Counted from the stretch's first letter, positions 6,501-55,733 are shown. The stretch is 64,000 nucleotides of DNA from Ostrea edulis (GCF_947568905.1 NC_079165.1:102486001-102550000); one strand, 5' to 3'. Made by a program: numbers and translations. Notes: a model not told the origin generated them from the sequence alone.

Positions 6501-6889
6501 AGGAGTTAACACGATCAAGAAGTACCAAGTATCAAGAAATCGGACCTAAAATAGATAAGGAAGGAAAGTCAGCCTATTCCCATTATCACGAAGTTGACAA
6601 TGAAAATAGTTCCTCAAATGAAAATAATGGAGGATATATAGAACCAGAATCACGAAGACCGACTCACTCCTATATAGAGGTGATAGAGCCTATGATACAT
6701 GCATCCGATCCTGCAAATAGTGACCAGGACGGGGGTAGCTCAGATAAATCTGACCACTTAGAGGAGTATCAAGATACTATGAATATAGAAACCAGTGATA
6801 AATCATGTTCAGATGATGTAAATGAGTCAAAACCTCACGATTCTAGCATGAGTGATACGTATCTCGACGTTGTGCACGGTTTGTCGTAA
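541..6889 (+). CDS. G1: mini Draper/MEGF10/SCARF-like EGF-TM-Tyr-motif receptor, spliced model 336 aa
   Basis: Exons 541-563 (MGDKACN|R, GTAAG donor), 2178-2239 (TYTEGLDCCINYFLRNKSCH, CAG/GTAAGT), 2784-2918 (CQPGTFGFNC...CHYTYGCPKM, TAG/GT) and 6099-6889 (Thr/Ser stalk, TM IVLIGAGVIIFLLLLILLAVL, Tyr-rich tail). They total 1011 nt, in frame with no stops. An upstream leader exon spliced to AG at 531-532 cannot be excluded. Confidence 0.8.
971..1302 (+). mobile_element. tRNA-derived SINE (family A, Meta/Mesc-like core)
   Basis: A box TGGCTGAGAGG, B box GGATTCGAATTCC, core CCCGTGTCACAGTAGGTGTAGCACGCTAAAGAACCCTC and (AATC)n tail; homologous copies at 47953 and 52444. Confidence 0.85.
1395..2215 (+). 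repeat. 56/62-bp minisatellite, 14 units, each a 3' splice site plus the 5' half of the G1 CC exon
   Basis: CAGGAC anchors at 1411, 1467, 1523, 1585, 1641, 1703, 1765, 1821, 1877, 1933, 1989, 2051, 2113 and 2175; unit TGTTTTCTTGTCTAGCAG|GACATATACTGAAGGACTCGACTGTTGTGTAAATTAT. Confidence 0.92.
2250..2630. repeat. Degenerate (ACA)n/(ATA)n low-complexity tract
   Basis: Imperfect AAC/AAT trinucleotide runs in G1 intron 2. Confidence 0.85.
4652..4842 (-). mobile_element. Naiad-type Penelope-like element, 3' end fragment
   Basis: Matches the recurring 3' terminus GGTGAAGATAACGAACAGTGATCAATC...ATCAGGTAAACGGAG seen throughout the window. Confidence 0.75.
5178..5395. repeat. 34-bp minisatellite, about 6.5 units
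   Basis: Unit AAAAGATGGATTCTTGCCAAAATTCAGAAACACG with a 34-nt period. Confidence 0.9.
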
Positions 6890-7619
6890 TTTATATCTAT
6901 TTCTTTTTAAAATAAAATCCTGTAGAACTTCCCTGTGAAGTCCCTGTGCATTCTATATAATATCGTTTCAGTTTAAGACAGTACAATTTACCCAATGGTT
7001 ACAATCTATGAACAAAATATCACCCATTACACGAATCCTGTTCTTCTTTTTTGGCAAAGTTCATCTTAAGGAGGAATATTACACGAGAGAAATTTGGTAT
7101 GGATGAAAAGTGAAACATATGTACAACAATATTTTGAAAATTTTCAAATGTAGTTGATTTAGTCAAAAAATGCAGTTTATGTAGAAAGTAATTTGGAAAA
7201 ACAAACTTTGTTGAATTCGAACCCACAATCTACAGTTCAGCTGCTATATGAAATCCTACTGAGCTACTCAGCTAGGCAATTGAATGTAAAAGAAATATAT
7301 AAAAATTGATGTTATCGATATTTTCATTCATTTTTCAAAAGGAAGTCCTTCATTATGACGATGTATTACATCTCCTTAATTAATATGATCTTACTTCTGA
7401 ACTGTATAAACGTAAATAATGGACAAGTATTTATGTACTTGAAAACCAGAGAAATAAATATCTCAGATTAAATATCAAAATCACACACAGACAGGTTAAT
7501 TTATTGAGAAAATTGTTTTCGCGGATATGAAATATTTTTGTGCAAAGTGGCGTTGCGATTAGCAATTGTGAATAAGAGTAGGAGCTGTGAGAAAGCTGGT
7601 ACGAATCCATCTAAAGGAA

Positions 7620-8358
7620 GCCGTGATCTTCATCTCATTGTATTCAATAAGAATTTTTGTTAGAGATGACTAATGTTGAAATTCCCATGGGCACAAATTC
7701 TGCTTCTTTATCAGATGATATGTTTTTGTATTCCTACGAGGCAGAATTTATTCAAAAGCTCTTACATAAGACAGAAAATATTTTGCTGTGTCCTTTAAGC
7801 CGACATTTATGTATATTAACGACATTCTATCATTTAACAATACTAATTTTCATACATATGTCTATTCGATTAAACTCGAAATAAAAGACACCATACAGTC
7901 TTGCAAATCTGCTCCATATTTGGATATTGTATCAATATAAATGTTAACGGTAAACTAACAACTCAACTTATGACAAACGAAATGACTTCATCGTCAACTT
8001 CCCATATTTATGTAACAATATTCCATTATTACCTACAGATGGTATTACTTGATCTCGTTTCAGCATTTTGCAAATTCTATGGTCATTATCATGATCTAAT
8101 TTCCACATACAACCTGTGATTAGGTTAAATGCTGTATGGCGTGTTAGGCCGTTCTTTCATACTGATTTTGGCTACGGATCACTCCGTTTACCTGATCAAG
8201 ATATAAGGGTCACGGTGAGTAATACCGGTCAACAGGGGATACGTAATTCTCCTAGGCATCTGATCCCACTTCTGGTTCACATGGATCCGTGCTTTCTCTA
8301 CCCTTAATTCTGCATTTCTATTGGATTTATGAAATTCATCATTGTTATCTTCACCTTA
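7620..8358 (+). mobile_element. Naiad-type Penelope-like retroelement, degenerate RT C-terminal half plus 3' UTR
   Basis: IPMGTN...FLYSYEAEFIQKLL motif followed by frameshifted RT/thumb sequence and the shared 3' terminus. Confidence 0.8.
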
Positions 8359-8711
8359 ACTGAGTACATCTGAAATATGAATGCGGAATTCCTACACTAA
8401 ATGGGTGCAATTTTATTTGACTATACCAAATTCACTAGGTTGTTTTTACGCTAAATCATCAAATATTTATTAAAACTTCTTGCTTTTGAAAAGCATGAGT
8501 AATTTTTTAACCTTTTATATTCCTTTAGATAACGTAAAGAATGTCTCAACTGTGACCCAAAAGAGGATTTTATGAAATTATGGAAGGGTGTCAACAGTTT
8601 AAATAAAGCATTTTGCAAATTCTACGGTCGTTTTAATTATCGTCTTTGCATTTTCAACCTAAACTAGAGGGAATGTTGCCTAATGTATGTAAAACGTATA
8701 CGATACCAATT

Positions 8712-8764
8712 TTGATGCACCAGATGCGCATTTTGACAAATAATGTCTCTTCAGTGATGCTCAA
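8712..8764 (-). ncRNA. Minimal type I hammerhead ribozyme, degenerate copy (GAAA to AAAA)
   Basis: Minus strand reads TTGAGCATCA-CTGAAGA-GACA TTATT TGTC-AAAA-TGCGCATC-TGGTGCATCAA. Stems I and II and the palindromic stem III (ATGCGCAT) are intact; catalytic G12 is mutated. It lies in a partial retrozyme copy at about 8690-8875. Confidence 0.7.
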
Positions 8765-9976
8765 CCGAAATGTTTGAAATCCAAAATAACTATGAAGTTT
8801 TGGAGCTAAATATAGCCAAAAACAGCGTGCCAAAAAAGTGGAGCCAAATTCGTCCAAGGATAAGAGCTATGCATATTTCATACCATTTGTTGGGCCGTTC
8901 TTTACAACTGATTTACATACTACAGACTACGTATTATTGTTTTAAGGGGTCCGTGTTTGCCTTGTTCTCCATTTTGTATTCTTTATTAGATCTATAACAT
9001 TGATCATTGTTCGTTATCTTCAACTTCTTTATTCCAGCATACATGGCTCCTATTTCTGAACATTTAATGGCAAGCAAAGACAAATCAAACGATTTTTTTC
9101 GCATTTCAAAGCTATAAAAACAAACAATATAAAATAAGGGAATAACTAAATGCTTCAGTTTTTGATGTTGTTTACTTTTAGATATTAGATATGTATAACT
9201 AAAATAATTCTACCACACGCAGAACTATTTTTTGTTTAAGTGAAAACAACCCATTCCTTCCTCAGGAGATGTTATTTAGATTTGGAAAACCCATGACAAA
9301 TTTATAAAACAGCCATATTTTACATTGAAGTAGCATAAGGTATTCTCTACGATAAACAACATGATTGATTTTAGCATTGGATACTTAACTTAACAAAACA
9401 TGTTCGATCAATTGGACATACTATTTTGGAACTCCAATTACTCCAGCGTAATTGTGGAAATGATGAACGAAAGTATGTGTGTAGATGGGTGGGTAGGTGG
9501 GAGAGAGAAAGAAAGAGGAGCAATTAAAAACATTCATCTAATGGACTATCAAATACAATAAGTCAATTACAATAAGTGGTTTTCAAAGAACACAATTGCC
9601 AAATTTATAACGATCTAGCTTGCTAATACAACCTATCATTGGGTCACATGCGGTATAACGTGTTTTGTATGTAGTGTTCCTCATATGTACACTCAGTTAT
9701 ATAATGATTCCAGAATGACTTTGAATGACGTACTGAATTCCAAAACTTTGCCTGTGGGTTTGACCGCATTAATGACTTACTGGGTTTTAGGATGTTTTGA
9801 CGGTCGTTGAATTCCGTGAGTCAGTAGTTAGAGTGATCACATACGGTGACCCTGAAATCATTCTAATGGTCTTTGTAGTGAGACGTTCATGTCTACAAGG
9901 ATAAAACAGAAATACTATCCTAATTTACAGAGGAAGAGTTCAAGACTTACTGTTTGTATTTCTTTTAACATTTTAG

Positions 9977-10377
9977 CCACCACGACAATATTTGAAGGAG
10001 ACAATGATTCTACTATGTTCACACATCCTGGATTTACTCATTCCATTGAACCAGTTACCTGTATGGATCGCCCGATACCCAATAAAGGAATGATTTCAAA
10101 AATGATCATAATTAACGGAAGCGTCATCATTGCTTTGCTTTTGGTGCTCATTATCACTATATCTATCAGAAAGTATTTGATGTTCCTGTACTGGAAAAGA
10201 AACGTGAAGTTAGATCATGCTCCACTAACCATGATTAATCCAGTTTATTCGGAAGCTGAAGGGGTGTCTGGAGATTATATCTATATAAAGCAAAACAAGC
10301 GAAATAACGAAGGTGATTCTAGAGGAAAACATCCGAGTTGTAGAGAGGAATTGGGGTTAATGTGTTTCAAAGTATGA
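9977..10377 (+). pseudogene. G2: receptor paralog terminal exon (stalk, TM, short tail with NPVY); upstream exons apparently decayed
   Basis: TTTTAG acceptor in phase 1, TM MIIINGSVIIALLLVLIITISI and tail INPVYSE. A possible frameshifted CC-exon relic (GFYEIMEGCQ) lies at about 8529-8595; no intact EGF exon was found. Confidence 0.55.
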
Positions 10378-10640
10378 ACCTTTGAAGAATAAATCACTAC
10401 TGCTCATCGAGATAATGTTTTAAAAGAAAACAAAGCAGACTCTAAGAAAAATACCCTAGAGGTAATGAAATAATTGACGATGATGTTATTTCAAACATTG
10501 TGTAAATCTATTTGTATCAGTCAGAGCATACTTACTAACGATGCAGCTGTATGATAATATAAACCATAGTTGTTATCTAGTAATATGGTACTTTTAACAG
10601 CATGGTTGGGGAAGTATTTCCTTAAACAAAATTTCGTACA

Positions 10641-10855
10641 AAATCTGTATATCTGTATGTATAGTGTTACCACTTCATTGACAACATTAAATATGTACAT
10701 CTGTATGTATAGCGTCACCACTTCATTGACAACATTAAATATATACATCTGTATGTATAGCGTCACCACGTCATTGACAACATTAAATCTGTATATCTGG
10801 ATATATAGTGTTATCACTTCATTGACAACATCAAATTTGTATATTTGTATGATAG
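10641..10855. repeat. 48-bp minisatellite, about 4.5 units
   Basis: Unit (C/A)TGTATATCTGTATGTATAGTGTTACCACTTCATTGACAACATTAAAT; accounts for ORFs 10521..10817 and 10570..10875. Confidence 0.9.
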
Positions 10856-11972
10856 ATGAGGATAACGAACAGTGATCAATATCATTATTCCTATAAGCAA
10901 TAATAAATAAAGAGTTGGAGAAAGATAGACCCCTGGACCCTTATTCACAAAACATCTTACGACTACACCGGAAAAAAAATTCTGTCTGATAATCAAATAC
11001 CGATCACAGGGTCAAAAGTATGTATTCAAGTTTTATAAACCATGGATGTACTTTACATATTGATTAAGAAATCTACAAGAAATGAAATATAAGATATTTA
11101 CAATGTTCATTAATTTTGATCTTAGTCGTACATGTAAGATATTTTGTGAATAAGGGCCCTGGACATACCAAAGGTGGGATCAGGTGCCTTAGAGAAATGA
11201 GATTCTCCTGTCGACCGGTCACATCCGCCGTGATTCTTATATCTTGGCCAAGTAAACGAAGGCATCCGTAGTCAAAATCTGTGTGCCAAGAATGGCTTGA
11301 CAATCGGCAATGAAACACGTCAGACAGCATTTGACCCAATGATAGGTTGTTTTGACGAACTAGATCGTTATAACGACCATAGAATTTGCAAAATGCTGAC
11401 TTTATTACAAAATGTTGAAGTTTTAACATCATCAACTTGTTTGTCAGTAACCTACTTCAATTTCAAAATTGATTATATGCAGAACAAGCTCTAGCGTATC
11501 GAATCAGTTGAGAGATATGAACACCATATGCACTGACAAACAAGTTGATGGTACAGGGATTTCAACAGTATCGATTGAAGTCAGCATTTCGCAAATTCTA
11601 TGGTCGTTATAACGATCTACTTCGTCAGTACAACCTCGAATTGGGTCAAATGCTGTTTGGCGTGTTTCATACCGATTGTTAAGCCGTTCTTGGCACACTG
11701 ATTTTGACTGCGGATAACTCCGTTTACCTGATCAGGATATATGGCTCACGGCGGGTGTGACCGGTCAACAGCGGATGTTTACTCCTCCTAGGCACCTGAT
11801 CCCACCTCTGGTGTGTCCAGGGGTCCGTGTTTACCCAACTATATATTTTGTATTGCTTATAGGAGTTATGAGATTGATCACTGTTCGTTATCTTCACCTT
11901 GCATATGCAGGTGATATATTGCTACATAAATATGGGAAGTTGACGATGGAGAAGCTGAAATCATCCCGTTGA
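10850..11972. mobile_element. Composite of Naiad-type PLE 3' fragments in inverted and tandem arrangement
   Basis: Minus copies at about 10850-10990 and 11157-11500, a plus copy at about 11560-11905 and short inverted pieces; all share the KFYGRYNDLVRQYNLSLGQMLSDVFH-coding segment or the 3' UTR. Confidence 0.8.
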
Positions 11973-13350
11973 CTTGCTAGTTTGCCGATAATATGTATGT
12001 TCAATAATGCAAATGTATTAACATGAATAATCAGTTGTTAATTTTCATTCATGTTAATCATTTGTTGTCTTCTTATATAGAAATATTGCATTGCACTTAT
12101 TTTAATACACAACTCTAATTCCTTATATTTTCGTTCCTGCAGCAATAGTTGAATTGTTCATAGGACATGGTAGGATTACTACTTGTAGAAATTGTAACTC
12201 ACTCCGTCTATTATAATAAAGATTTCTGGCCATGAGTACTGAAACTTAACTATTCAGTTACAGCATGAAAATATCATTGCATCAAAAAATTCGTATAACC
12301 CTAAAGAATTAAAGTAATTATGAAAGTTCCACATTCCCTGTATTGATCAAGGTTTCCAGAGCAAGCAGCAACCTATCATACTGTAGGTACAGTTATGATA
12401 ATGATCATAAAATTTATATAGCGCCTGATATAAAACAAATTACTCCAAGGCGCTTCATAAGGGTAAGAAGAGGAATGCAATAATAAAACACAATTAAATA
12501 AAATTCAATGACAATATGACATAAGATCTTATATTTGTAAAATTATCAAAATAAAACATTATAATTGAGATCAATAACTAAACCTTTCATTGTTTTGTTT
12601 GATTTAGAGCACTATGCAAAGTACTACAAATCAACGAAAAGATTAATTGAAAGTCAGGGAAGGCAATTCTTTTTAAAAAGTTGGTTTTGGTAGCTTTAAC
12701 ATGCTTTAGAAGGTCATACTACAAACTGGCTGCAACCCAGTTAAACGTGCGTACTCCAAAAGACTGTGTACGAATGTTTGACACAGTGATCGAGTCTCAG
12801 TGATGTTACACATCTTAGTGGTCATGATGGGAAATAAACGTTAATGAGTTCTTCTAAATATTCGGGAACACATCCCGCCAACGCGGAGAGGTTTTGCATT
12901 GTGGACGATACTGCACGAAAGCCAACGCAGCTGTACTAAGACTGAGGAAATATGATCCCGCGTCGTTGTCCTCGACACAAGCCTGGCTGTGGTGTTCTGT
13001 ACCTTCTGCAAGCGATCCAAAGTAGTCTTGCTGATTCCTAACAGAAGTTTTGATGGAACAAATGCATTGACAAGAGTTTTACATGCGTCTGATATTGCGA
13101 ATTCGACCAATATTACTAATATGAAAGTGGCAAGCCTTCAAAATAAAATGACACATGGTACTCAAAAGCGAGACAAGGATCGAAGTACACACCATGGAAC
13201 AGATATGTTGTTTTCTCCACCTTTAAGGTGGTGTAATGGAGTTTTTGCACATTATGTTTTGAAAAAAACAATGATCAACTCCGTTTTGTCCTGGCTTAGC
13301 TTCAACAGGTTTGTAGTCATCGATGTGCTAATTTCTACTATACAATCTTG

Positions 13351-13985: not shown

Positions 13986-14029
13986 AATATACTGAGACGA
14001 CAAATGAATGAAAATTATTGTTGTTAATG

Positions 14030-19400: not shown

Positions 19401-21933
19401 TATACTAAGATAATTCTACATATATAGGGGTTTCAACAGTCTCGATTGAAGTCAGCATTTCGCAAATTCTATGGTCGTTATAACGATCTAGTTCGTCAAT
19501 ACAACCTATCATTGGGTCAAATCCTGTCTGACGTGTTTCATACCGACTGTTAAGCCGTTCTTGGCACACTGATTTTGACTGCAGATAACTCTGTTTATCT
19601 GATCAGGATATAGGGCTCACGGCGGGTGTGACCGGTCAACAGGGGGTGCTTACTCCTCCTAGGCACCTGATCCCACCTCTGGTGTGTCCAGGTGTCCGTG
19701 TTTGCCCAACTATCTATTTTGTATTGCTTGTAGGAGTTATGAGATTGGTCACTGTTCTTTATCTTCACCTTGCATACTATGGTAATATTCCATAAACCAT
19801 TTACAAAAATACACTGTTACATGCAAGACCAAATACAGATTGTTACATAACTGTCAGACCCTATATCATGGTCGTCCCCAGTCCTTTTTTATTTGTAAAA
19901 ATTAACAAAACCAAAGATAAAGGTATTTCACGATGATTTAACATTTTTAACAAGATTGAAAAAGCTTCCATCTGTATGACAAACATATTGTTTTTATCCG
20001 TTTTGCAAGAATGTCCAAATACACTGTAAGTAGCATAACTTTTTTCACATTCACACAGATGTCCGTTCCGCCTGAACATCGATCTGAAATGTAGCACCAC
20101 TTCTTCTTTATAAGGATGGCAAAAGTTACTGCACAGTGGAGGCGGTTAAACTGGCAACAAGCATAGTAATGGATCGGATGACACCTGGAAGGTCAAACAC
20201 GTCTTCTTTATCAGGACTGATGCATAGTCTGGAATAAATGGACAATATTTGAAATGTTTTGTGTGCTTTATATCCTAACAAATAAATTGTTCTCTAGTAA
20301 ATATATTGTTGTTTCAATCCTACAATTTTATTGTGGTATGAATTATGATAGTGGGTTATCTTTAGAAGTACATTCTTACTAAATGTAGGATTGATAATGT
20401 ATTTATATACACATTGACATAGGTTGTATGGGTATATAAGCGTATTTAAGTACATATTGAGAATAACTATGTGGATATGTAGATGTATTTATGTACACCT
20501 GAAAATGTTTACGTGGGAGTGTAATAATATTTAATAGGTACTTGTATTTCCTAAAGGGCAGGGGTGTTTCTTATCACCGTGTCAGTATTTCAAGCATAAT
20601 TTCTATAATAGCTCACGATAATTTTGCAAATGAATTGTCTCATCAAGGATTTAGAACATCAGGTAAATGGTTTTTATTTAATTGAGAATTCATTCCTTAT
20701 CATCTAGCTTGCAAAGCAGGGAGCTACGGTACCAACTGCGAAAAGAATTGTCCACCCGGTCGTTATGGAAAATTCTGTGCATTGGAATGCGCTTGTCGAA
20801 CGAGTTATTACTGTGATAAGGCGAAGGGTTGCATATCTAGAGGTAATTCAGTCAATATTAGTATATTTTACTGCATAAGAATCATTTAACAAACAGTTAA
20901 ATATACGATCGATGTTTTAAAACTTTCTTTTCAAAGACATTGATGTAAAAGGGTTTTTAGTTATGAAATTGAGAGATCGGGAGAGAATGTCACTTTTGAT
21001 ATTAATCATATAATATATTATATGAATGTAATGTAGAATTTTGCACGTTAAGAACCTTTATACATGTATATACAAATAGTTAAACATTCCTACTATTGTT
21101 ATATTTCGTTTTCAGAAAGACCATTTAAACCCACAGCTTCTCTGCCACTATCATCATCAGCAACGTCAGCTAATTCATATTTGTTTTCGGAGGGTTGGAC
21201 ATCTGATGCTTCAACTTCAACGAAATCAAAGATAGGGTCTACAAGACCAGTAGTATCATCAACAACTACCCTGGGGTCTTCAACAACATCTAGCGAAATT
21301 ATCAATGCAGAAACCAATAATGATATCACTATTTTTTTCATGGGGGGAATTATTGGAATCCTCATAATCATTATATTTGTGATAATTTCAAGAAAACTTT
21401 GCGTCCTACACACAAATAGGAAATACCAGAAAAATTTAGAGGAAACAAAACATTTTACGGAAGGAAGACGGTCCGACGAGTACCAGGAAATAAACATAAA
21501 TGACATTGTAGATCAGGCAGAAGTATCTGCAAATTGGTACAATATCATAACCGAGGAAACTGCACAATCTCAGGGTTCCAATTATCAAGAGATTGTGTCT
21601 GAATTAAACAAGGAAGTAAAGTCGACCTACTTTCATCACGAATTCGACAATAGTACCTCATCAGGAAATAATGGAGGATATATAGAACCAGAATCACGAA
21701 GACCGACTCACTCTTATATAGAGGTTATAGAGCCTATGATACATGCGTCCGATCCTGCAAATAGTGACCAGGACGGGGGTAGCTCAGATAAATCTGACCA
21801 CTTAGAGGAGTATCAAGATACTATGAATATAGAGAAAAGTGATCAATCATGTTCAAATGAGGCAAAGGGGTCAAATCTCCATGAATTTAACTTAAATGAT
21901 ACGTATCTCGATGTTGTGCATAATTTATCCTAA
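16458..21933 (+). CDS. G3: receptor paralog closest to G1, spliced model 342 aa
   Basis: Tentative exon 16458-16476 (MTVKTY, GTTGGT donor), 16591-16647 (GDYRCFANYFWSDPENGCV, GTATGT donor), 20708-20842 (CKAGSYGTNC...CDKAKGCISR) and 21116-21933 (stalk, TM FFMGGIIGILIIIIFVIIS, tail). Total 1029 nt in frame. The last two exons are firm; the first is uncertain because the alternative donor at 16481 would frameshift. Confidence 0.65.
16632..17710 (+). repeat. 31/42/43-bp minisatellite, about 25 units, each the 3' end of the G3 CC exon plus a 5' splice site
   Basis: Unit GAGAATGGCTGTGTCG|GTATGTAAAGGTATTTTTGTACACAT; the first unit overlaps the true exon end at 16647. Degenerate units resume at about 20395-20520. 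Confidence 0.88.
17994..19052 (+). pseudogene. P2X7 C-terminal ballast-like Cys-rich protein (transposon-type), 3 exons, disabled
   Basis: Exon 1 ...FPYQYE...RLGNTEW, exon 2 CQCGFCTNMPTAKESVCCTE...CIAEHPDF (acceptor AG lost near 18562) and exon 3 YRACRQFV*WCLGYLGHKVRVPLPSC with a premature TGA at 18933. Confidence 0.75.
19425..19772 (+). mobile_element. Naiad-type PLE 3' fragment
   Basis: Near-consensus copy of the shared 3' region ending TTATCTTCACCT. Confidence 0.85.
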
Positions 21934-31312: not shown

Positions 31313-31345
<33 letters not shown>

Positions 31346-33394: not shown

Positions 33395-35024
33395 ATGCAG
33401 CCTGGAGTCTGTTCAAAGTAAGATAATGATACAATATTACTGTAATAGAAGTATTCTAAATTGTAATTTTCTTGTCTTCTATGATATTTTCAGCAGTGAA
33501 GTGAAGGATGAAAGCATATCCCGTTGCTGTTTAGGTTTCCAGTTCATCAATGGCGCTTGTCAGCGTAAGTCCCTGAGCAGTGTTTTATTTGAAATATCTT
33601 AAAATGGTTTTTTTTTAATACACCTTGCAGACTATACTGGTGAAATATAGAAAGGATCAATGAAAGCCGTGATTATGTGACACATTTTAAATAAAGCTTT
33701 TGTGAATTTTAATTGAAATACTATTTAAAATTTATACATTTATAAACGTTCCTAAACTAATCCAGATTTTGTTTTACTTTAGACGAATCGTGTAGGGGCA
33801 AACATTGGTTTCTTTAAATGAGGAAATTGTGTTTCCCTGATTAAAGTGCATATCATAGACGTGTTATGAGAAAACATGTGTAATTCCCAATATCAATTAT
33901 CCAACTGGATATATAACCGATTTTGTTTTACCTTTGTCATTAGTAAAAAACATTTCTGTTTACGACAATTCTATTAGTAATTATTATGAACATCATTCTA
34001 AAGATTGTCCAGATGGCCAGTATGGACAGGGCTGTACGGAACCTTGCCCTAAAGGGCGGTTTGGGGCACAGTGTGCAGGGGAATGTGAATGTTTACCGGA
34101 AGACTGCGATACATACCTAGGATGTCCAAAGCACACACCGTCAATATCCGGTATATCGTCAATTACTGAAGAAATAATTAAACGATCGCACGTTTTAAGT
34201 ATAGTTCATTTTATAATCACTTTATCAAGTGTTACTTACTCAAAACATACACTGGTTGAATTAATATGCAGAAAATCATTCGTCATATTGCAGAGGCTGT
34301 GCACGACAGCATAACAGGAGTGACGTATTCAGGCACATCATCGTTCTCAGCGCCAAGATGGCCACCAACGCTTCATTCTTCGACTCGACCGTCAATCTCA
34401 ACATCCTCTTCACTGGTGATATCCACAGGAACCCTAACCTCGGGAACTACCCAGTATTTGTCAAAACATTGGTCTACTTCACAGTTTGGCTTACCCAACC
34501 AGGAGACAAATTCCAAAAGCAACATTTTGATAGTATTAGGAATGGGGGCTGGAATGGTGCTCATGGTGATCGTAATTCTTGTGTTATTAGCACAAAGATT
34601 TATGAGGAAGACATTGAGACATTACAATAAAACAAATGATGTAGAGATTACGAATGAAAATGGGCAAGGCGTGCCTGGTGTATATCAAGACATCAATTAT
34701 GACTTGATGGAAGAATCAAGGAATGGCAGACAGTTGGAAAAAGATAACAAACGATATGAACCCGTCGACAAGGAAATCACTGCTTCAGAACGCGAGGGGC
34801 TCCAAATACGCGATGGTAATGACCTAAGCCAGTGTAGGTCAACTTATCTCAACGTTCAAACAACCAACGCTTCTTCGCCTCATTATTCAGTAGGATATTT
34901 GGAGCCCATACAAATGACTAAACAAAGAAACAACTCCTATGTAGAAATGATAGAATCTTCGGTCCAAATAAACAGCAACGTATCTGCAAAAGTATACGAG
35001 AACAGTGTTCCCATGAAAGTGTAG
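33395..35024 (+). CDS. G4: receptor paralog, spliced model 323 aa
   Basis: Exons 33395-33417 (MQPGVCS, GTAAGA), 33494-33564 (SEVKDESISRCCLGFQFINGACQ, NAGNAG acceptor, GTAAGT), 34004-34150 (CPDGQYGQGC...CDTYLGCP) and 34294-35024 (stalk, TM ILIVLGMGAGMVLMVIVILVLLA, tail). Total 972 nt in frame. Confidence 0.82.
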
Positions 35025-38341: not shown

Positions 38342-40564
38342 ATGGATAATTCCGGAATTTGCGCCAGGTATTATAATAATTTTATTATACATTATACCCT
38401 TGTTAATCAATATTAGAGATGAAAATATAAGTATATGCCTTGTCCTCTCTAGATCCAAGGATGGCAGTATAAAATGCTGTGTAAACCATTATTTGAAAGA
38501 AAATTCCTGTGTAGGTGAGTTGAACATTGAGAAGGTCAGAAATAGAATCAATGATGAAAAGACAGGTTACAACCATTTTTGTCTCATCTCTTCAGAATGC
38601 CCGCTCGGATCTTTTGGTTGGGGTTGTAAAACTCTTTGCCCTGCTGGAAGTTACGGTTGGTTGTGCTCAAACCAATGCAATTGTCTGGATCATGTTTGTG
38701 ACTACGTCAAAGGTTGTACAACAAAGAACAGAACGGCTAGTACCATTCTGCCTGCTACGACATCGAGAATTCCCACAGGTTCCAGATCAGACATTCAAAG
38801 CACGTCAGGTGATAGTTCCACTGGTAAGTTTCTTCGCCAATATGCGATGTTGTCTTCAATTTAGAGATTTGACAAAGTAAACGAGGAATCCTTTTATTCC
38901 CTTACCACGTGATAGGTTTAGATAAATGATATAAACCATTCTGAGACAGAAAATAGTCAGCATCCCGATGGTCATAAGGTGATACGAATTTGGTAAACTA
39001 TTCATCTGACTATATTGTGTGCCCAGGGTCCTTGCTTGCCCTACTCCTAAATTTGTATTCTTTGTAAGCATCATGAGATTGCTCATTTGCAGAACCGAAT
39101 AAACAAACAGCATGTGTTAGGAATAAGTTTTTAAAGCATACACAAACTTTCTTTGACTCAATTATTAACAATGAAATGGACTAATACTGACAAAAGTTAT
39201 CATACATTGACCTGTCACATGAACTGAAGATGACGTACGGCAGTAAATACCGATGTCTGACTTTGATCAAAACATGACTCACAGCATTTGGTAACATGTA
39301 ATATGACATTATTGGAACAATTAACAATACACAAGACATTCTTAAGACAATAATGCATAAACATATTTCACAAAGCAGTTGGATCAGATATGATTGTGTA
39401 CATAATACTGATAAAGCATTTAAACACATTTGAAACGTTTCGAATCTCTTTAAAAGGTTTCCACATATCATTAACTATATACGATCAAAAGTCGACGCAG
39501 ATCTCTATTCTATATCACATTTCAAAATTTTAATACCAAAATTTAACAATGAATTATTAATATGCAATTGAACACACTTTTGGTTTTTTTAGGAAGATCC
39601 AATCAGCAAATATTTGTAGAGACAAAAAATACTAGACTAAGTATCACAATCAATAAACTCTCAGCGAACAGAAACATTTTTACCATTCTTTCTATAAACA
39701 CATCTTGTTGAAGGCTAGTATGGACTAGTATAGTCATCAGCAGTTAATCATCTTTGTCCATTTGTTGTCGTTCATTCTCCAGAAACGCTGTATACATTTT
39801 CTACAGGCTTTATCATGAAGATATGAGAAGGGTTATATAATATTTCATTTATATTGTTTTATTCAGGTTTGGGGTTGAAATCCACAATGCAACCAATATT
39901 TACATCACCAACATTATCAATATCGAATATTATACAGTCAACGTCGACAATCTTAATATCGACAATGACCAAAACAGCTGGGGTGAAACCTGATAAACCC
40001 GCGTCCGATTTTGCCATTTTTCTTGTTCCTATTGGGATTATCATTGTAATACTACTTATCGTGATTATCCTACTTATTGCTTGGAAACTCAATTTAGTTC
40101 AACGTCACAATCAGATTTTGACTTCAGAGGTAGCTACTTTAAAGAAGATACCTGCAACCGATATAGAATCAGCGAACTATGAGGAAATCAACACTGTATC
40201 AGATCGGATTGGAGTTAAGGAAAGCTATCGAAATTTTCACACGATATCTGAGCCAGATGTTTATCAGTTATCGCTCTCTAAGTACCAGGAAATTAATGCA
40301 GAGGAAGAGAAAATCACAGAACATTCAACAATGGAAAATGAAGCTGAGATAAACACCTCGGTCATGTATCTCTTACCCACGACAGCTACATCAAAACACA
40401 CCTATATTGACATTGTAGAATCCTCCCCCGAGATCAGCGAGACGTGGAAAAGAAATAGTGATGATAGTGAGACAGTTTCAGTAACAGAGAAATATGATGA
40501 TACCATCTGCTCTCCGTATTATGAGTGCATATCATCCGAAAACATGTACTTACACCCCATTTAA
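38342..40564 (+). CDS. G5: receptor paralog, spliced model 337 aa
   Basis: Exons 38342-38367 (MDNSGICA|R), 38453-38514 (SKDGSIKCCVNHYLKENSCV, GTGAGT), 38596-38823 (ECPLGSFGWGC...CDYVKGC plus Thr/Ser stalk, GTAAGT) and 39867-40564 (TM FAIFLVPIGIIIVILLIVIILLIAW, tail). Total 1014 nt in frame. Confidence 0.82.
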
Positions 40565-43450: not shown

Positions 43451-43693
43451 TTGATTGGTGCATTAAAATTGGTACCGTATAAGTTTTCCATTGTGACCCC
43501 TGGGTCGAGGCCTCTGCTGGTGGACTGTTAGTCCCCGAGGGTCTCTACAGCCCAGTAGCGAAGTACTTCGTTACTAGCTTGAAAATACGGATGTATATTT
43601 AATTGCTGTGATAAAATTTAGAAATTCATTTCAAAATTAAAGATTATCTCCCTCATGCAAAACTCTTATCCTTAGACGAATTTTGCTCCACTT

Positions 43694-44712
43694 TTTAGTT
43701 TCAAGTGTTTTGAATTATGGTAGTGAAATTTGGGGTTTTAACCCAGGTAACGATGTTGAAAAGGTACATGTGGACTTTTGTAAGCGAATTTTACATGTAA
43801 AGAAGTGCACTCCAAATTATATGGTTTACGGGGAACTTGGTCGTGTGCCAATGTATAATTTACGTATGATAAAAATTATCAAATATTGGTTGAAAGTTAT
43901 CAAAACCGACAATTGTATCCTTCAATCTATATATGATGACATGTTGATTTGCAATCACAAGAACTGTAATTGGCGCTGCCAAGTTAAGCATTTATTATTA
44001 TCGAAAGGATTTGGTGATGTATGGTTTAACCACTATGTTAATAATGAAGTTTTATTTCTAGAATGTCTCAAACAGCGTTTAACTGACAACTTCATGCAGT
44101 CACGAGATGAATTTTTTGTTAATTCACCCAAATGTATTCTGTATAGACACCTTATTGATAATGTTACCATTCAATTTTACTTGACAAAATCTATTCCGGA
44201 AAATCTTATTAATCTTTTAGCAAAATTTAGATTGTCTGCTCACCAGCTTAGAATTGAACAAGGTAGATATAATGGCACAGCAAGACAAGATCGATTGTGT
44301 GAATTTTGTAATTTGAACGAAGTTGAGGACGAATATCATTTTATTTTAATATGTCCTTTGTACAAAAACCTCAGATCTGCATATATAAAAAAATATTATT
44401 GGTCGCATGCTTCTATGTTTAAACTGGTACAATTGATGTCAATTCATAATAGAAAACAAATCTGTAATCTGGGTAAATTTTTAAAAGGTGCTTTACTCTT
44501 ACGATCTAGCCAAACTATCGTCTAATGTATATGCTGGTTTTTGTTGGTTTCTTTTTTATGTAAACTTGTCTTATAACTCTCTTCATGTATGTCCATCCTC
44601 TAATATTCACTCCACTTTTCATACTGTATACATCTTTTTTGTTTATACTTTGTAATTGAATATGTATTATGCTGATGAGCCGTAAGGCTTAAAGCCAATA
44701 AACAATACAATA
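43694..44712 (+). mobile_element. 5'-truncated non-LTR retrotransposon, RTE-X-like (RT C-terminus plus CCHC-type domain)
   Basis: Open frame 43683..44525 with NYGSEIWG, VYGELGRVP, FRLSAHQLRIEQGRY and RLCEFC..EDEYHFILICPLY; 3' stem-loop GAGCC-GTAA-GGCTT, AATAAA and (CAATA)n tail. Confidence 0.8.
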
Positions 44713-44859: not shown

Positions 44860-45590
44860 AAGAAGACGGAAATTAAGTACATGCAGGTGGATTAAGCATA
44901 TTAAGATGGTCGATATCTAAGCACTGCAAAATTTGTTTATAATTATAAAGTTTGTATGCAATAGTAGAAGTATATTTGTAGGAAATACAGGGTGTAGACT
45001 TGAAATTGAAGTATGTTGGAACACAAGACTGAACCCTTTTATGACGAAGAATGTTGCTCATGCTGACGACATCTATTCCTTTGTTTGTAAATTTAAGCAT
45101 AAGGAACTGGTGGCATGGCTCGGGAGGAACATCATCCATGACCCGCGGTGGTTTAAAAAGCCTGTGATTGGCAACATCCATAATCATAGAGTTCAGTCTA
45201 TATTCTGGTGTTGAAAAATTCAGGTATAGACTAGCTTTGGTTTCTTCAAATAACGTATTAAAACTCTTAATGGAACAGAGTAAATTTTTGTGCGAATATG
45301 ATGTGGAGCTAATTGTCTGTTGACGTAAGGCAAAAGTGACATCATGTATACTTGGTCTTTTATATATACGATGTCCATGACTGCGTTTTCGTCTTTGAGT
45401 AGTTGGAAAGAGCCTCATCACATTCACGTTATTTCCTTGTGGACTGGTCAAATTTCCTACATCGTATACATTATCATTGCATCCATATGGAAATGCAGTA
45501 CCTAGAGTCCTGATCCAATGATCTTCTCCTTGTCTATGAAAAGGGGTACTTAATGTTGGATTATTTGTGTTTTTCTAAAACCCTGACCTT
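44860..45590 (-). mobile_element. Naiad-type PLE N-terminal region: GIY-YIG endonuclease C-terminal motif and linker
   Basis: Minus strand RQGEDHWIRTLGTAFPYGCND (GIY-YIG E..WI..L.T..P.G.N motif) upstream of ORF 44873..45451, which ends PPACT at the probable CxC linker. Confidence 0.7.
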
Positions 45591-49263: not shown

Positions 49264-49298
<35 letters not shown>

Positions 49299-49999
49299 CA
49301 GATATTGATGACAGCAAAAACGAGCTACGGTGAGCAGAGTTTGGGTAATAGAAGCTTATAAACAAAAAATATTAGATATTTGTTTTAAAATTATCACCGC
49401 CTTGCCATTAAATGGTGATTTTTATTATCGTATAGCGTAATTTTCATTATACCACCGACGTTTCACGTTTTCTATTAAATCACATATCTTAATTTCATTG
49501 GTTGAGGCACGCATGCAAGGGGTGGGGTGGGGGTGGGGGGGGGTTAACCCACCAACTATGGGCTAGGAAGAAAGTGAATACTTGTATATTTGACTATTTG
49601 TAGGCATTTGCAGTTGTAAAATGCCACATGTTTTAGTCCATAGTTTCAATTGGACCCCTAAAAATGCATGGAGTGAAACCCACTTCCCTGGGGAGAATTT
49701 ATATAGATCCGCTCATATGCATGTGGCTTGCTCTTACGGGTAGCTCCATCAACATATTAATCAGCTATAGTTGTTCTCTTATACATTTGATACAGTAACG
49801 AAGGAAAACTTGGCTATGCACCGATTGACCTTTACCTAACCCCACAAAAGGGGATAATTCAAATTGCCGTTTGATACGTGTAGGTTTATTATTGTCAATA
49901 ATATTCATTGATATAATTTTCGTGTTTGTTGATTTATTTTCGATCTCTCATCAATACATGTCGACCACAATCGACCCGGGGTCGGTTGAAAAATAGGAT

Positions 50000-50200
50000 G
50001 TGGGTTGTCCGGGTAGTACATCTCACCGCTACGACCCAAGTTCGATCCTGAGGATTAACAGTGGTTAAATTATGCGAGAGGGTATTGTGGTCATCCACTT
50101 GGACACGTGGGTTTCCACCAGGTATTCCGATTCCAATGACTCCTTCTCTACTGAGACGACGAGAGGAAAACGTCTTTGTTAATCGTTTAAGCATTTATAT
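50000..50200 (+). mobile_element. CORE-like SINE (family C); reverse copy at about 52790-52985
   Basis: GTTCGATCC B box followed by GTGGGTTTCCACCAGGTATTCCGATTCC CORE-like block. Confidence 0.6.
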
Positions 50201-50493
50201 TATTAATCAATGGAAGTAATCAAAAGAAATTAAATTCATTACAAAATTGATAATTTAATTAAGATACAAAGAGAAAATAAGTGAAAATTTCCCTTTAATT
50301 TTTTTTTATATCTTCCTCCGAAGTATGGGTACCGTCAAAACAGGAAATAATTTCAGTGTATTTTACAATTCTAATTATAGATTGCATGTAATCGTTTAAA
50401 GATGACCTGATGTTGGAATGATTTCCTGACCGGATACTGATTAATAAGCACACTTGAAATGTTAAAAAGCACAAAGTTAATCTGCGGTCTGAT

Positions 50494-52026
50494 ATGGATT
50501 TCGGAAGATGTAACAGGTATGAAAATAAAAAATAAGAGAATGAAATCGATTCCAAGATGATTCTGGAAAAAAAAAATCAAAATTTGATATGGACATGACT
50601 TGAAGTAATTGCGAAATATAAATTGTCTTCTCTTTTTTTTTTTTTTTTTTAATCAGCTCCTTGAGCAGTAGGATTGTATGTTGCTCTAACTTTTATTTGG
50701 AGGGAGGTGTTTGTAAACGTAAGTATTTTATTAACAAAAATAAGAATCAACATTAAAGATATACTTTTATCAAACTGGAAATAACTCAAAATCATTTAAA
50801 ATTGTTCTTCACATTTCGAATCAATTAAGTATCATTAGAAACAAATGGCAAAGATCTGTTATGTTATATTTACTTCCTATTTACACGGCTCCTCTGACGT
50901 GGAGATTTTTTTTACAGCGTGTCCAGGCGGGACGTACGGGGTGAACTGTTCCCAGCGCTGTCCCACTGGTTTGTATGGTGAACGCTGCGGTTACTTCTGT
51001 AAGTGTCCACCAGAACAATGCATTGCTGCTACTGGGTGCATCACAACATCGCCGGCAGCATCTTCTCAAATGACAACAGGTGTGGTTTTAATGAATGAAA
51101 ATAAATAGCGTGACTACAATAGTATCTGATAAAAAAGATTCACATATGTTTAGATAAATTTTATTGTGAACTAAATATTATCATTTTTAAAAAAAGTACA
51201 ATTTTTTTTAAATGAATGCGAATTTATACTGCGTGTATATCCATATGATTGAGTGACGATGTATTCTATTGAATTTTCAGAAACAACCATGACGGTATAC
51301 GCACATGAAACATCTACAGGAAGCAGTCTGAAAACAACTGATTTACTTGATTCAACAGTGAGGAATGGTATTTTTTCTATGCAAGAGGAGACCGAGCCTT
51401 TCCCATATAAAATGATTATGGTAGGAATGGGTGCTGTTATACTCTGTTTTTTAGTTTTCTCATTGATTCAAATATGCTCCAAAGTGCGGTCCAAACGCAA
51501 ACGTAAGAGAGTCACACCATCTGAAGAGAGTGGCACTTATCATGAAATCCCAGCAGCAGGTGAAATAGCACCACTGGAGATCGCAAGACATTACAATGAA
51601 ATAACAGAGCACAGTGACGGCGGATACAAAGAAATCCAACAACAAAAGAGACAGCAGGAAATGCAGCAAGTTGGACTCTATCGGGAGCTGATATCTGACG
51701 ATATCAAACTGGAAAACATTGATACACTACATGAAACTATTTCCCAAAATATGTACCTAACAGTCGACAACGCAACAAGAGACGAGGAAAACGCAAGTTC
51801 TGATGACGAAAATAGAGAATCGTACCTAGAACCTTCCTCCAAAAAAGAAAAACACCTTTACACCGACATTTTGGAATCTTCATATGACGTCACTTCCGAT
51901 ACGGGTACTGGAGGAGATGGCATTCTGTCGTGTTCAGATGATGGACGAGATGATAGCGTGTCAACAGATTCAGCAGGCAGAAGTGGATCAGTGCAACAAA
52001 ATGACATTTACTTGGACGTCATTTGA
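50494..52026 (+). CDS. G6: receptor paralog with a canonical ITAM-spaced motif, spliced model 330 aa
   Basis: Exons 50494-50516 (MDFGRCN|S), 50657-50718 (SLSSRIVCCSNFYLEGGVCK, GTAAGT), 50918-51079 (CPGGTYGVNC...CIAATGC) and 51281-52026 (TM MIMVGMGAVILCFLVFSLIQIC, tail). Total 993 nt in frame. Confidence 0.83.
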
Positions 52027-52443
52027 TTCTACGTGGTTTGATCGTTTTGTAGAAAAATAAATGTGTAAATTATAAAGAAAGTATTTTATGTATCTTTGAT
52101 TCTGTGGCTTTGTAGTAAACGTACATCTCAAAAGAAATATCACTAAAATAACCAGAGTTAACTGTAGTTTTAAAAAATCAATATCATGAAACACGATTTG
52201 ATTTGGAAGATGGTTAACGTTATTGAAACAATGCTCCAAAGTACAATTAAGGACAACAGACTTGGTTCATTTCTTCATTACATTAAACAAAATGGAAATT
52301 ATAGGGTAACTTTACTATGAGTACACAAAAAAGATACAAGTTAACTAGGACATATATATGTATTTACATGGATCGTATGAAAATTGGGAAAATATTTTCC
52401 AATGTACTGTTTAAGAATGTTTACACTATCCGTTTACGTAACC

Positions 52444-52781
52444 ACCACGGTGGTCTAGAGGTAGAGCGTTCGGCCCGCATACGGAAGGTCGGGGTTCGAA
52501 TCCCGGCCGCAACAAACCTAAGTCGTTAAAGCAGGTAGTGACAGTTCCATCGCCATACGCTCGGCATGAAGGTGTGAATGACACGAGTCCTCGGAGAGTA
52601 CCTTCAAAACGGATGTCCCGTGTCACAGTAGATGTGGCACCCTAAAGGCCCTTCATTGTTTAATGACCGTAAGCGCAGAACACAGGCCTAAATTAGAAGC
52701 CCTTCACCGGTATTCATGATGTTTTCGTATGAGTGAAAAATTCTGGAGAGGGACGTTAAACAAGATAAAATCAATCGATCA
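52444..52781 (+). mobile_element. SINE family A copy
   Basis: A and B boxes, body and tail homologous to 971-1302; a further 3' fragment lies at about 54076-54145. Confidence 0.85.
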
Positions 52782-54783
52782 ATATTGGTATACGTTAACA
52801 GAGAAGTTCTACGACTTAATTGTATTCGTGCAAGGGGGTTATTGCTGTAGATGGAAACCGGAATGCCTGGAGGAAACCCGAGTGAGCGACCACAATACCC
52901 TCTCACACACATACACTGCTGATCCTAAGGACCGAACTCTGGTGGCAGAGGTGAAAAGCGATTGTTTTACATGTGTCCACTATACTGACCGGACATCGTC
53001 GTAACTGTAGAAGAATGTTCCGGGGGAAATTATACAGAGAATGCTTTTACTCAAAATCTTTAGACATTCTATAAAAAATATTGAAGTCACATATGTATCT
53101 AATAATACAGTGTTCCACCGAAATTGAATATCCAATAAAATCACTGCATGATTGCGTCAATGGGGTTATCGGGGATTTCATACTTGACGACATGTGCTTT
53201 TGATTGTACGTCTCCTGAGAGGGAAACTGTACTTTGTCCGTGTTACAAACACTACCGAAGTAGAATAAACATAAATACATGTACCTCCACGCTAGAATTA
53301 TTGAAGAAGATATTCTTGACCTCGACATATTGCTGGGAAATAAAAACCAATCCCGAAGGTTTTTCCAACAAAAATATCTTGGCCTCATAGGGGATTACTT
53401 TTCAATAAATTCTTTCTACACGTTAATTTCTGAAATGTAATGTTAAGCATTTTGGCCTCAGGGGGTATTCTTGAACAAAATCTTTGTACGCGTGAATTTC
53501 TGAAATACAATGTTGAACTATCTTTAATCATTGTAAGTGAAGAGGGATAATAAAGTGTTATTAATATCAGTAATTTCATTTCCAGAAAAAACTTCCCATC
53601 CTTCGATACATCGACATGTGTCACTTGAAAAAAGAACGATAAAAACCACCACTAATGTATTAAGGAAGAATTGTTCATGTCGATAGTTTGATAATATATT
53701 ACTGCACATTATTAAATTGACTGAAAATGATTTCAGAACCACCATTAGCTAATCAAAATTTCCTAATTGATGATAGATTCAGACCTGAAAAAATGATTGC
53801 TATCTATCCTACCATCACTTGCTTTTATTATCATGAGCTTAGATAATACTGTAATCTACGAAATATACTAGCGTGTAACATACAAAACCTTTGATGCTTG
53901 TAAAGTGCAAAAAATATATTGGTATCGCACTTTTCATGATAACCCCTTTTCAATAAAATGATATTGAAAATAAGTTTCTAGAGGTGAAACCATTGAAGTG
54001 ACTTGCAGTATGATATATTTCCTGCAATATAAATCGTGATATGTTTAAGTTGTGTAGGTTTTTTGTAGATAAAAAGAGAACGTCTCCATATGAGTGGAAT
54101 ATTCTCGTGAAAGACGTTAAACAATATAAAATTAATCAATCAATAACAAGAGAGCACTTATGTGGTGTAGTGTGTTGTTTACAGTCGTGCGCTATTTCAC
54201 AGCCAAACAACGTCCTATACCTTAACAGTATCCACAGCGGCGGGATTAGCTATTCTGTTTGATGATTTCGACGAATATAATCTTGAAGAGAAAATATATT
54301 GAAAAACGCCAGTGTGTTTGATTCATAGAATTGGAACCGTCCATCTCTACTCGGTGGCAGGTATACTATGTGGAATATTGAACTTGTACTGACGGTGAAT
54401 GTTGACAAATCATAAGTTATGAAGAAATTAATCTAGTGTATATTGTTATTTTACTGCCAACTCTTTCAATACAATGTATATGCGTTTTAAACTCAAAATA
54501 GAATGGCATCTATTTCATACATGTAACATTGAATTTTGTTCGAGATGAATAACCTTGTATAAACAGTTGTCTGATATGTAATCCGTCTGAATGGCCGCTT
54601 GATGATAGGAGAAATTTAATATTACTCAAATGCAATGTGTATAACAATGTGATATTATTTGATGAAAATTTGAATTTGTTTAGAATTGATCAGATTGGTA
54701 TTTCGAAAGGATTTTTTTTCTTCAACTTTTTCCCCATACATTCACTGTAGTTATAACATAACTCTGTTATATCATGTATACAT

Positions 54784-54995
54784 AAAAGGTGAAGATAACG
54801 AACAGTGGTCAATCTCATAAATCCCATAAGCAATGCAAAATAGATAGTTGGGCAAACATGAACCACTGGACACACCAAAGGTAGGATCAGGTGCCTAGGA
54901 GGAGTAAGCATCCCCTGTCGACCCGTCACACCCGCCGTGAGGAGTAAGCATCCCCTGTCGACCCGTCACACCCGCCGTGACCCCTATATCATGTC
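54784..54995 (-). mobile_element. Naiad-type PLE 3' fragment with ~40-bp internal duplication, just upstream of the G7 acceptor
   Basis: Shared terminus plus duplicated GGAGTAAGCATCCCCTGTCGACCCGTCACACCCGCCGTGA. Confidence 0.8.
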
Positions 54996-55026
54996 ACATC
55001 TAAATTAAAACTTTTCTTTTTTCCAG

Positions 55027-55733
55027 TTGACAGAATGTTTACGAGACAGGAAGTGCATTCATTGAATGGAAGTAAAGATGATGTTGAAAGATTGAATTCA
55101 TCACAAACTACAATACGTTCAGTGAAAAATACTGTCGAAATAATCGAACATGTACTTACCACGAGTCCAGAAAGTATTCAAAATGATGAGATGTGTAATT
55201 GTTATAATCTGTTCCTTGCCCTGCTTATATTGGGGGTCATTGTGTTGTGCCTACTAACAACAGTCTTAGTTTTGATTTACGAACTAAGAATTAATCATAA
55301 AACATATTTCTGTGTTAAAAATTCTACCGACATCCTGCAGAAAAATGTGCCGAAACGAAACAATGTGTCGAAACGAAATAATGTATCGAAACGAAACAAT
55401 GTGTCGAAAAGTACGAGGTCCAGAAACAAGAAAAGGCACTTTGGAAGAGCTGATCGTCCAGTTTCCTTCGACTCACAGATGGCCGATCATGAGGAAAACG
55501 ATTTATCCGAGGATTCCGACGGATATGTCAGACCGGAGAACCAAGACGAAAAGTACGAGTATGCAGAGGTTTTGTCTGATCTTGACGATACTGTAAATGA
55601 ACGAAATGCTTCTGAAAATCCCGTTCTGGAGTGTTCACGTTCTCAGTACTACAATTCAAAGTGCGTTGAGGAACACATCGAAGATCAAACCCCAATATAT
55701 CTTAATGTGAATTGTGGAGAATATAATGCATAA
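55027..55733 (+). CDS. G7: receptor paralog terminal exon (stalk, TM, Tyr tail); upstream exons not found
   Basis: Strong TTTTCTTTTTTCCAG acceptor in phase 1, open for 235 codons; TM LFLALLILGVIVLCLLTTVLVLIY, YVRP-x8-YAEV and C-terminal YLNV. Confidence 0.65.

Follow-up and report, generated by a model that had tools for sequence, protein, structure and literature searches.

Background

Draper, CED-1, MEGF10 and Jedi-1 are type-I single-pass receptors in which EGF modules of the MEGF/SREC/Tie type stand behind a CC-containing leader, and this build is shared by the small oyster receptors considered here. Draper carries an ITAM (activation motif of the immunoreceptor tyrosine-based type), whose tyrosines Y934 and Y949 lie 15 apart, plus about ten other tyrosines, phosphorylated by Src42A and contributing to engulfment (bioRxiv 10.1101/198986). 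A classical ITAM is known from oysters as well, where YTEL-x7-YEKL of the receptor CgIgR binds CgSyk (PMC6994640). The present work concerns a 64-kb stretch of the Ostrea edulis genome (NC_079165.1:102486001-102550000; hereafter the window, meaning all 64,000 nucleotides analysed, with positions counted from the first letter). It holds paralogous genes in tandem, all on the plus strand, that encode small membrane receptors of the EGF type, and the element in question is a pair of tyrosines of the form YxxP…Yx[DE][VI] in the cytoplasmic tails of their products.

The family resembles a miniature Draper or MEGF10 but falls outside that group on account of its ectodomain and of the missing NPxY. 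Its members have a single EGF module (two in the gene termed G8), without an EMI array, where Draper, CED-1 and MEGF10 have an EMI domain and about 15 repeats, and NPxY, the CED-6/GULP site, is found in 0/32 family tails, only the unrelated tail encoded by the exon G2 having NPVY. Homologues of the oyster tails are detectable only in oysters, and neither the YxxP…YxEV pair nor the EETYQEIN and C-terminal YLDV sites that accompany it were located in Draper in that study.

A tyrosine pair shared by the receptor tails

A regular-expression search of the six-frame translation locates six pairs, all on the plus strand, where the first-pass annotation had placed them and with the spacers it had given, eight residues in five and ten in the sixth. 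G1 (6635..6682) and G3 (21679..21726) both read YIEP-ESRRPTHS-YIEV, G5 reads YLLP-TTATSKHT-YIDI (40367..40414), G6 YLEP-SSKKEKHL-YTDI (51823..51870) and G7 YVRP-ENQDEKYE-YAEV (55524..55571), and G4 has the longer YLEP-x10-YVEM (34896..34949). The strict pattern, Y..P.{8}Y.[DE][VI], has 5 matches in the six-frame translation of the whole window, all of them among these pairs. When the residues of a tail are shuffled it turns up with P = 1e-4 to 6.5e-4 per tail (P = 2e-3 to 5e-3 for a loose pattern), and these shuffles rule out chance occurrence of the pair. Two further motifs attributed to most tails were recovered as well, namely a membrane-proximal Y[QEH][ED]I, in G1 and G3-G6, and a C-terminal YL[DNH][VP], in G1, G3 and G5-G7.

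The tails had also been described as otherwise unalignable, which does not hold: a MAFFT alignment spans their full length, at 17-24% identity and with several shared blocks. With nine tails aligned, the pair supplies the sole invariant columns, Y, P and Y. The instances owe their shared position to common descent, and the proper test of the motif is therefore its conservation rather than its chance occurrence. G1 and G3 count as one observation in such a test. A tract at 6622-6789 and 21666-21833, which spans the motif pair plus the following YQDT site, is identical in 165/168 nucleotides (nt) with all 3 differences synonymous, against about 65% identity in the flanks, and is for this reason read as the product of gene conversion; since it covers the motif, the two copies are not independent.

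Conservation of the pair among oysters

Word-index protein searches under-sampled the family (4, 3 and 27 matches), and because they recovered so few relatives an exhaustive profile search was run with the nine-tail alignment, which, out of 1.84 billion proteins, picked up 29 representatives with E <= 1e-3. The named members are all from oysters, i.e. Magallana/Crassostrea gigas, C. angulata, C. virginica, Saccostrea echinata, S. cucullata and O. edulis, some of them automatically named "multiple EGF-like domains protein 10" (MEGF10) by NCBI/UniProt. No non-ostreid member appeared in any search, and a 27-tail profile brought in further members, again without any other taxon. Conservation was assessed on 32 tails from Ostrea, Crassostrea/Magallana and Saccostrea, over 164 well-occupied alignment columns.

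The proline at +3 of the first half is the most conserved column of the tail (32/32). The first tyrosine is kept in 31/32 tails (rank 3 of 164 columns) and the second in 30/32 (rank 8), and valine or isoleucine occupies +3 of the second half in 28/32 (25 with Val and 3 with Ile, among them G5 and G6), with Met in G4. The mean identity of columns with a tyrosine majority is 0.75 and that of the remaining columns 0.40 (Mann-Whitney p = 2e-5). As a consensus the family has S-Y-L-[KE]-P, followed by 7-9 mostly basic residues ending in [HR]-S and then Y-[IVL]-[DE]-V-[ILV]-[DE]-S; the flanking S(-1), [KE](+2) and [HR]S are conserved too. As to the spacer, the length of eight residues reported for most of the window is the modal value (15 tails) but is not fixed family-wide, the others being 7 (8 tails), 9 (7 tails), 10 (G4) and 21 (the protein P0027). 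The corresponding Tyr-to-Tyr distances are 12, 11, 13, 14 and 25, of which 11-13 account for 30/32 tails, and the other distances between tyrosines in the tails are similarly constrained (coefficient of variation 0.08-0.19).

The closest relatives of G4 and G5 are Saccostrea-type or Crassostrea-type proteins (P0027 and P0015). Because these paralogues have closest relatives of their own in other genera, they must be older than the separation of those genera, and the motif has been conserved over a long time. Purifying selection on the pair is strong in all three oyster genera, and it bears on the tyrosines and on their +3 partners. Several Crassostrea-type members (P0008, P0060, P0062, P0005 and P0013) have the pair twice, by an internal duplication of about 80 residues. 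In P0008, P0060 and P0062 (Crassostrea) the duplication took in the complete pair as one unit, its 7-residue spacer included, and in other duplicated copies the halves decay separately, P0013 having lost the second tyrosine only and P0005 having only Gln in place of Pro.

Sequencing-run contigs from a relative about 95% identical allow a small comparison within the genus, which points the same way. Two runs, X1 and X2, whose "RNA" tag is only a guess, contain spliced contigs of G6 and G7, and DNA runs lack such contigs; being contigs, these data are informative on splicing and not on expression level, tissue or strand. The G6 intron they define (51080-51280) is GT..AG and in frame. Within the G6 terminal exon, 21/30 listed differences from the relative are non-synonymous, the list being limited to the best supported differences. 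The three listed differences in the motif block are all synonymous, leaving the protein sequence of the pair unchanged, and all nine tyrosine contexts are unaltered.

Other tyrosine motifs of the tails

At least six tyrosine motifs, the pair among them, are conserved to an equal degree. Near the membrane lies EE-x-Y-Q-E-I-N (Tyr 97%, Ile 97%), at the C-terminus Y-L-D-V (Tyr 100%), and the remaining ones are K-Y-[YF]-E-L, P-Y-x-x-I, Y-Q-E-I and S-Q-Y-[LI]-D-[PT]. Upstream of the YxxP pair, 21/32 tails carry a second pair that conforms to the ITAM consensus YxxL/I-x6-12-YxxL/I, mostly as KY[YF]EL-x10/11-PYxxI, that is, K-Y-[YF]-E-L plus P-Y-x-x-I; for shuffled tails the figure is 1-7% of trials. 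Within the window the ITAM-consensus pair is present in G1 (YNII-x11-YQEI, 6485..6541), G3 (YNII-x11-YQEI, 21538..21594) and G6 (YNEI-x7-YKEI, 51592..51636), all on the plus strand, and absent from G4, G5 and G7. A multi-tyrosine tail with a long-spacer ITAM-consensus pair is a further likeness to Draper, the oyster tyrosines being 12-18 apart, mostly 14-16, against 15 in Draper.

The 32 family tails are acidic and rich in Ser and Asn, with about 9.9 tyrosines each. They are predicted to be disordered, with no secondary structure after a juxtamembrane helix (predicted TM score, pTM, 0.19), and disorder is the usual setting of short linear motifs. A juxtamembrane cysteine occurs in 17/28 tails in a Q-x-C-x-K-L context at alignment column 71 (G1 RRLCV, G3 RKLCV, G6 QICSK, G7 YFCVK) and may, by analogy with raft-associated adaptors, be a palmitoylation site.

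Interpretation of the pair

The pair would belong among the tyrosine-based docking motifs of receptor tails and is, judged by its sequence conservation, real, well conserved and lineage-restricted. We think that it is probably a module of the short linear motif type, conserved in the disordered cytoplasmic tails of small type-I receptors that form an oyster-specific tandem family, and that it serves for separate phosphotyrosine docking. Most likely it is one among several sites for phosphotyrosine docking and not an ITAM in modified form, a view favoured because a regular ITAM-type pair lies upstream in many of the same tails. Ligand-driven clustering would lead to phosphorylation of the tail by a Src-family kinase, whereupon the first tyrosine (S-Y-L-[KE]-P) and the second ([HR]-S-Y-[IVL]-[DE]-V) would become two SH2 docking sites of different specificity. 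The first, pY-hydrophobic-x-P, would suit the class of PLCgamma C-SH2, SHP2 N-SH2, RasGAP and Crk-Nck, and the second, pY-[IV]-[DE]-V, that of PLCgamma N-SH2, SHP2 and Src. The pair would act beside the upstream ITAM-consensus pair, the membrane-proximal EETYQEIN site and the C-terminal YLDV site, with the whole tail working like Draper's multi-tyrosine tail. Besides PLCgamma, SHP2 N-SH2, RasGAP and Crk/Nck are proline-tolerant SH2 readers. The C-SH2 domain of PLCgamma1 binds pY-I-I-P of PDGFR (the receptor for platelet-derived growth factor), tandem SH2 proteins bind doubly phosphorylated motifs, and the Src SH2 optimum is pYEEI (PMC7337045), which the EETYQEI site resembles.

Several observations weigh against this docking model. 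The SH2 class assignment is built on vertebrate specificities and not on oyster SH2 domains. The second half of the pair and several other tail motifs also fit the endocytic signal YxxPhi. P0026, a fragment of 108 residues, keeps the block with both tyrosines replaced, by His and Phe. A search of sequencing runs found none recorded as RNA from O. edulis itself that holds the stretch. Literature searches brought up no paper that deals with these genes or with a motif of this kind; the LOC identifiers are named in no paper, "ITAM-like" combined with "YxxP" was not found, and the oyster MEGF10 papers found were transcriptome lists.

The annotation itself had proposed an ITAM-like bidentate site with an altered first half, and the parts of this that stand include the setting, the disordered cytoplasmic tail of single-pass receptors, and the spacing. 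As in a classical ITAM, two tyrosines lie 11-13 apart in a receptor tail, preceded by acidic or polar residues and with an aliphatic +3 residue in the second half, and against an ITAM spacer of 6-8 residues (classical) or 6-12 (broad) the pair has 7-9 in 30/32 tails, 10 in G4 and 21 in P0027. The +3 rule fails in both halves, however, the first having Pro and not L/I throughout and the second mostly Val rather than Leu/Ile, and many tails have a separate ITAM-consensus pair. These features, a +3 proline in 32/32 tails that breaks the YxxL/I rule and an upstream ITAM-consensus pair in 21/32, make Syk or Shark, named earlier as possible readers, very improbable as the bidentate reader of the pair. 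Their site is better sought at the upstream pair, since it has the ITAM consensus and a Draper-like spacing, and that pair would be the more likely Syk/Shark site. In its general form the idea holds that the pair is one ITAM-like unit, that Syk/Shark, SHP2, RasGAP or PLCgamma would grip it with the two SH2 domains of one protein molecule, and that the spacer length is required. Comparable hetero-specific phosphotyrosine pairs, used by SHP2, NCK, PLCgamma or RasGAP, occur in receptor tyrosine kinases and docking proteins. PDGFR-beta has YxxV-x8-YxxP (YTAV-x8-YIIP, Y1009 and Y1021), two close tyrosines with differing +1 to +3 residues and the same x8 spacing, unlike the oyster pair in that the halves stand in reverse order and the oyster receptor has no kinase domain. 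BTAM (an activation motif of the bisphosphoryl tyrosine-based kind) of Gab1, which serves SHP2, differs in its spacing of about 30 residues. Position -2 of the second oyster tyrosine is H, R, N or Q, the first-site +3 residue is Pro and the tyrosines stand 11-13 apart, none of which agrees with SHP2 binding through a BTAM or through paired immunoreceptor tyrosine-based inhibitory and switch motifs (ITIM-ITSM), where both sites have a hydrophobic residue or Thr at -2 and L/I/V at +3 and lie ~20-30 residues apart. Partners of RasGAP (p190RhoGAP, Dok1) have YxxP in both halves and the oyster pair in the first half only; a second YxDP (SQY[LI]DP) lies downstream in Crassostrea-type tails, 41-50 residues from the first in single-module tails. 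Songyang et al. reportedly set out SH2 preferences, including those of the two PLCgamma SH2 domains, in 1993. The halves of the oyster pair match the preferences of these two domains, in that account and in PMC7337045, and in PDGFR-beta pY1009 binds SHP2/NCK (PMC6110853) and a pY1021 peptide binds PLCgamma C-SH2 (PMC7337045). For every tandem-SH2 family, avidity is greatest where phosphotyrosines are closely paired (PMC12132298; PMC7337045), oysters possess Syk and a functional classical ITAM receptor (PMC6994640), and the narrow range of Tyr-to-Tyr distances, the conserved basic character of the spacer with its [HR]-S before the second tyrosine, and the duplication of the module as a whole in Crassostrea all speak for a joint function. 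Against it stand the variation of the spacer, the decay of single halves in P0013 and P0005, and the place of the pair as only one among at least six equally conserved tyrosine motifs. Because the other inter-tyrosine distances are just as constrained and the halves decay separately, spacing cannot tell a bidentate site from two neighbouring sites, and we rejected it as proof of bidentate binding. On balance we regard a single bidentate unit as rather unlikely. A specific version of it, a lineage-specific "hetero-ITAM" in which the unlike halves pY-L-x-P and pY-I-[DE]-V, 11-13 apart, are read jointly by PLCgamma or SHP2, seems to us less likely still. If it were true, one small receptor would have two tandem-SH2 docking units, an ITAM-type one for Syk plus the YxxP pair, in a compact two-channel signalling tail undescribed in any animal.

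Two readings dispense with phosphotyrosine or with selection on the motif. The block could be a trafficking or otherwise phospho-independent motif, e.g. a YxxPhi signal for an AP adaptor mu subunit plus a Pro-containing recognition element. YIEV, YIDI, YVDV, YLDV, YQEI and YFEL all fit YxxPhi, the flanking S(-1), [KE](+2) and [HR]S are conserved along with the tyrosines, and the loss of both tyrosines from an otherwise retained block in P0026 points the same way, with the reservation that this is a fragment. An endocytic role of the second half is conceivable, but YxxP departs from YxxPhi although no tail residues are better conserved than its Tyr and Pro, and the invariant Pro would go unexplained; eight conserved tyrosines in an acidic disordered tail, together with the ITAM-consensus pair and EETYQEI, form the signature of a tyrosine-kinase substrate, and the trafficking reading is accordingly one we hold to be quite improbable. 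That the conservation simply follows from recent duplication and gene conversion in the cluster is scarcely credible. G1 and G3 do share the block through the 168-nt tract, at 98% DNA identity with synonymous sites included, and gene conversion holds for these two genes only. It was rejected as a general explanation for the whole family, as the tails of G4-G7 are only 17-24% identical to those of G1/G3 and to each other and nevertheless retain Y, P and Y, Crassostrea/Magallana and Saccostrea proteins also possess the pair, and the paralogues have separate orthologues in other genera.

Organization of the gene cluster

Each gene consists of a leader exon, an EGF exon and a terminal exon for the stalk, transmembrane (TM) helix and tail. 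The short leader is of the CCxN[YF][YF] or CCxN[YH][YF] type ("CC" leader), and the EGF exon encodes one Cys-rich module, C-x2-G-x-[FY]-G-x2-C-x3-C-x2-G-x-Y-G-x2-C-x3-C-x-C…G-C. The terminal exon encodes a Ser/Thr-rich (mucin) stalk, a TM helix with a mean Kyte-Doolittle value of 2.7-3.7, and a tail that in the window has 147-186 residues, 9-10 tyrosines and 14-21% Asp+Glu. Predicted family proteins have 320-430 amino acids (aa). The G3 product is the NCBI "uncharacterized protein LOC125680946" (P0001; 100% identity across the query region) and G1 corresponds to LOC130046444 (P0002).

The terminal exons, all on the plus strand, were placed at 6098..6886 for G1 (tail from 6329; tblastn of P0002 and the TM/tail split), 21079..21930 for G3 (tail from 21388; tblastn of P0001 and the TM/tail split), 34299..35021 for G4 (tail from 34581; cf. 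P0027), 39875..40561 for G5 (tail from 40079; by its Saccostrea orthologue P0015, 47%), 51281..52023 for G6 (tail from 51469; by the in-frame junction of spliced contigs in X1/X2) and 55027..55730 for G7 (tail from 55278; by contig pieces in X1/X2 joining 54357|55024). EGF-like exons, of the Tie2/SCARF1/MEGF type and likewise on the plus strand, lie at 2786..2917 (G1, with the family profile against PDB as further evidence), 20704..20841 (G3), 34000..34155 (G4) and 50918..51079 (G6, its 3' part present in transcripts), and in G5 the CC leader and EGF-like exon(s) occupy 38451..38825.

The ectodomain profile of the family matches, among PDB sequences, the Tie2 EGF repeats (E = 3.5e-8) and SCARF1 (E = 6e-7), and the G5 EGF exon alone gave nothing useful there. 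An AlphaFold model of the ectodomain has a predicted local distance difference test score (pLDDT) of 76, and its best Foldseek matches are Tie2, with weak E-values. Pfam gave nothing above threshold for exon translations or full-length family proteins; DUF7198 on G3 was set aside as a sub-threshold match (E ~1e-3, 18-19 bits vs. a cut-off of 27). Look-alikes of the G5 tail in the ESM Atlas (<=0.81, including poxvirus A36R, a Tyr-motif membrane protein) were discarded as compositional resemblance and not homology.

Some members depart from the common layout. The G4 terminal exon ends before the C-terminal YLDV of the family, with a stop soon after a YENS site (34995-35024), and G4 differs in this from its closest relative P0027 and from nearly all family members. 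In G7 the upstream exon (<=54182-54360) is non-coding and has an in-frame stop, for which reason the open reading frame begins at a Met within the terminal exon. G7 has neither signal peptide nor EGF module and looks like a transmembrane-adaptor-like remnant, whose tail has lost the membrane-proximal motifs, kept the YxxP pair and YLNV, and contains a triple KRNNVS repeat at about 55353-55406. With its short N-terminal extracellular stretch, TM helix, juxtamembrane Cys and Tyr-motif tail it resembles the transmembrane adaptors LAT, PAG/Cbp and SIT, whereas most family members keep a folded EGF ectodomain, and a sequence relationship of the family to vertebrate transmembrane adaptors was not found. 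The G2 exon (9856-10374) encodes its own stalk, TM helix and a short, different tail with NPVY-x10-YIYI, the NPxY being as in CED-1/Draper; ectodomain exons of its own were not found in the window. In NCBI isoform X2 of LOC130046444 (P0002) the last codons of G1 (6880-6886, after YLDVVH) are spliced to the G2 exon (9970-10374), giving a protein with two TM helices. G8 (60410-60523 and 61217-61630) is a further family-like gene with a CC leader and two EGF modules, for which no stalk/TM/tail exon turned up in the remainder of the window, whose last part, 62879-64000, is filled with minisatellites.

Very high-copy repeats lie between G6 and G7 and around the latter (52470-52823, 54063-54239, 54771-55124 and 55833-56000), one directly 5' of the G7 terminal exon; their contig depth in DNA runs is 1e4-4e6 vs. 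about 40 in the flanks. Two long open stretches stand between G5 and G6, one of 294 aa at 43641-44522 (+), without a Pfam match, and one of 233 aa at 44876-45574 (-). Beyond O. edulis, two complete units that are neighbours are predicted to be fused in P0011 of Saccostrea echinata, a hint that tandem arrays exist in other oysters too.

Significance

Oysters rely on expanded innate receptor families, few of which have a known signalling route. The present analysis defines an uncharacterised, oyster-restricted receptor family whose tails carry an ITAM-consensus pair and at least five further conserved tyrosine motifs, the YxxP…YxEV pair being the best conserved of them. If the pair is merely two independent SH2 sites, it would be an ordinary though well-conserved feature of a new receptor family. 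If it is a true docking unit, it would offer a testable entry into molluscan phosphotyrosine signalling and a natural example of how tandem tyrosine motifs diversify.

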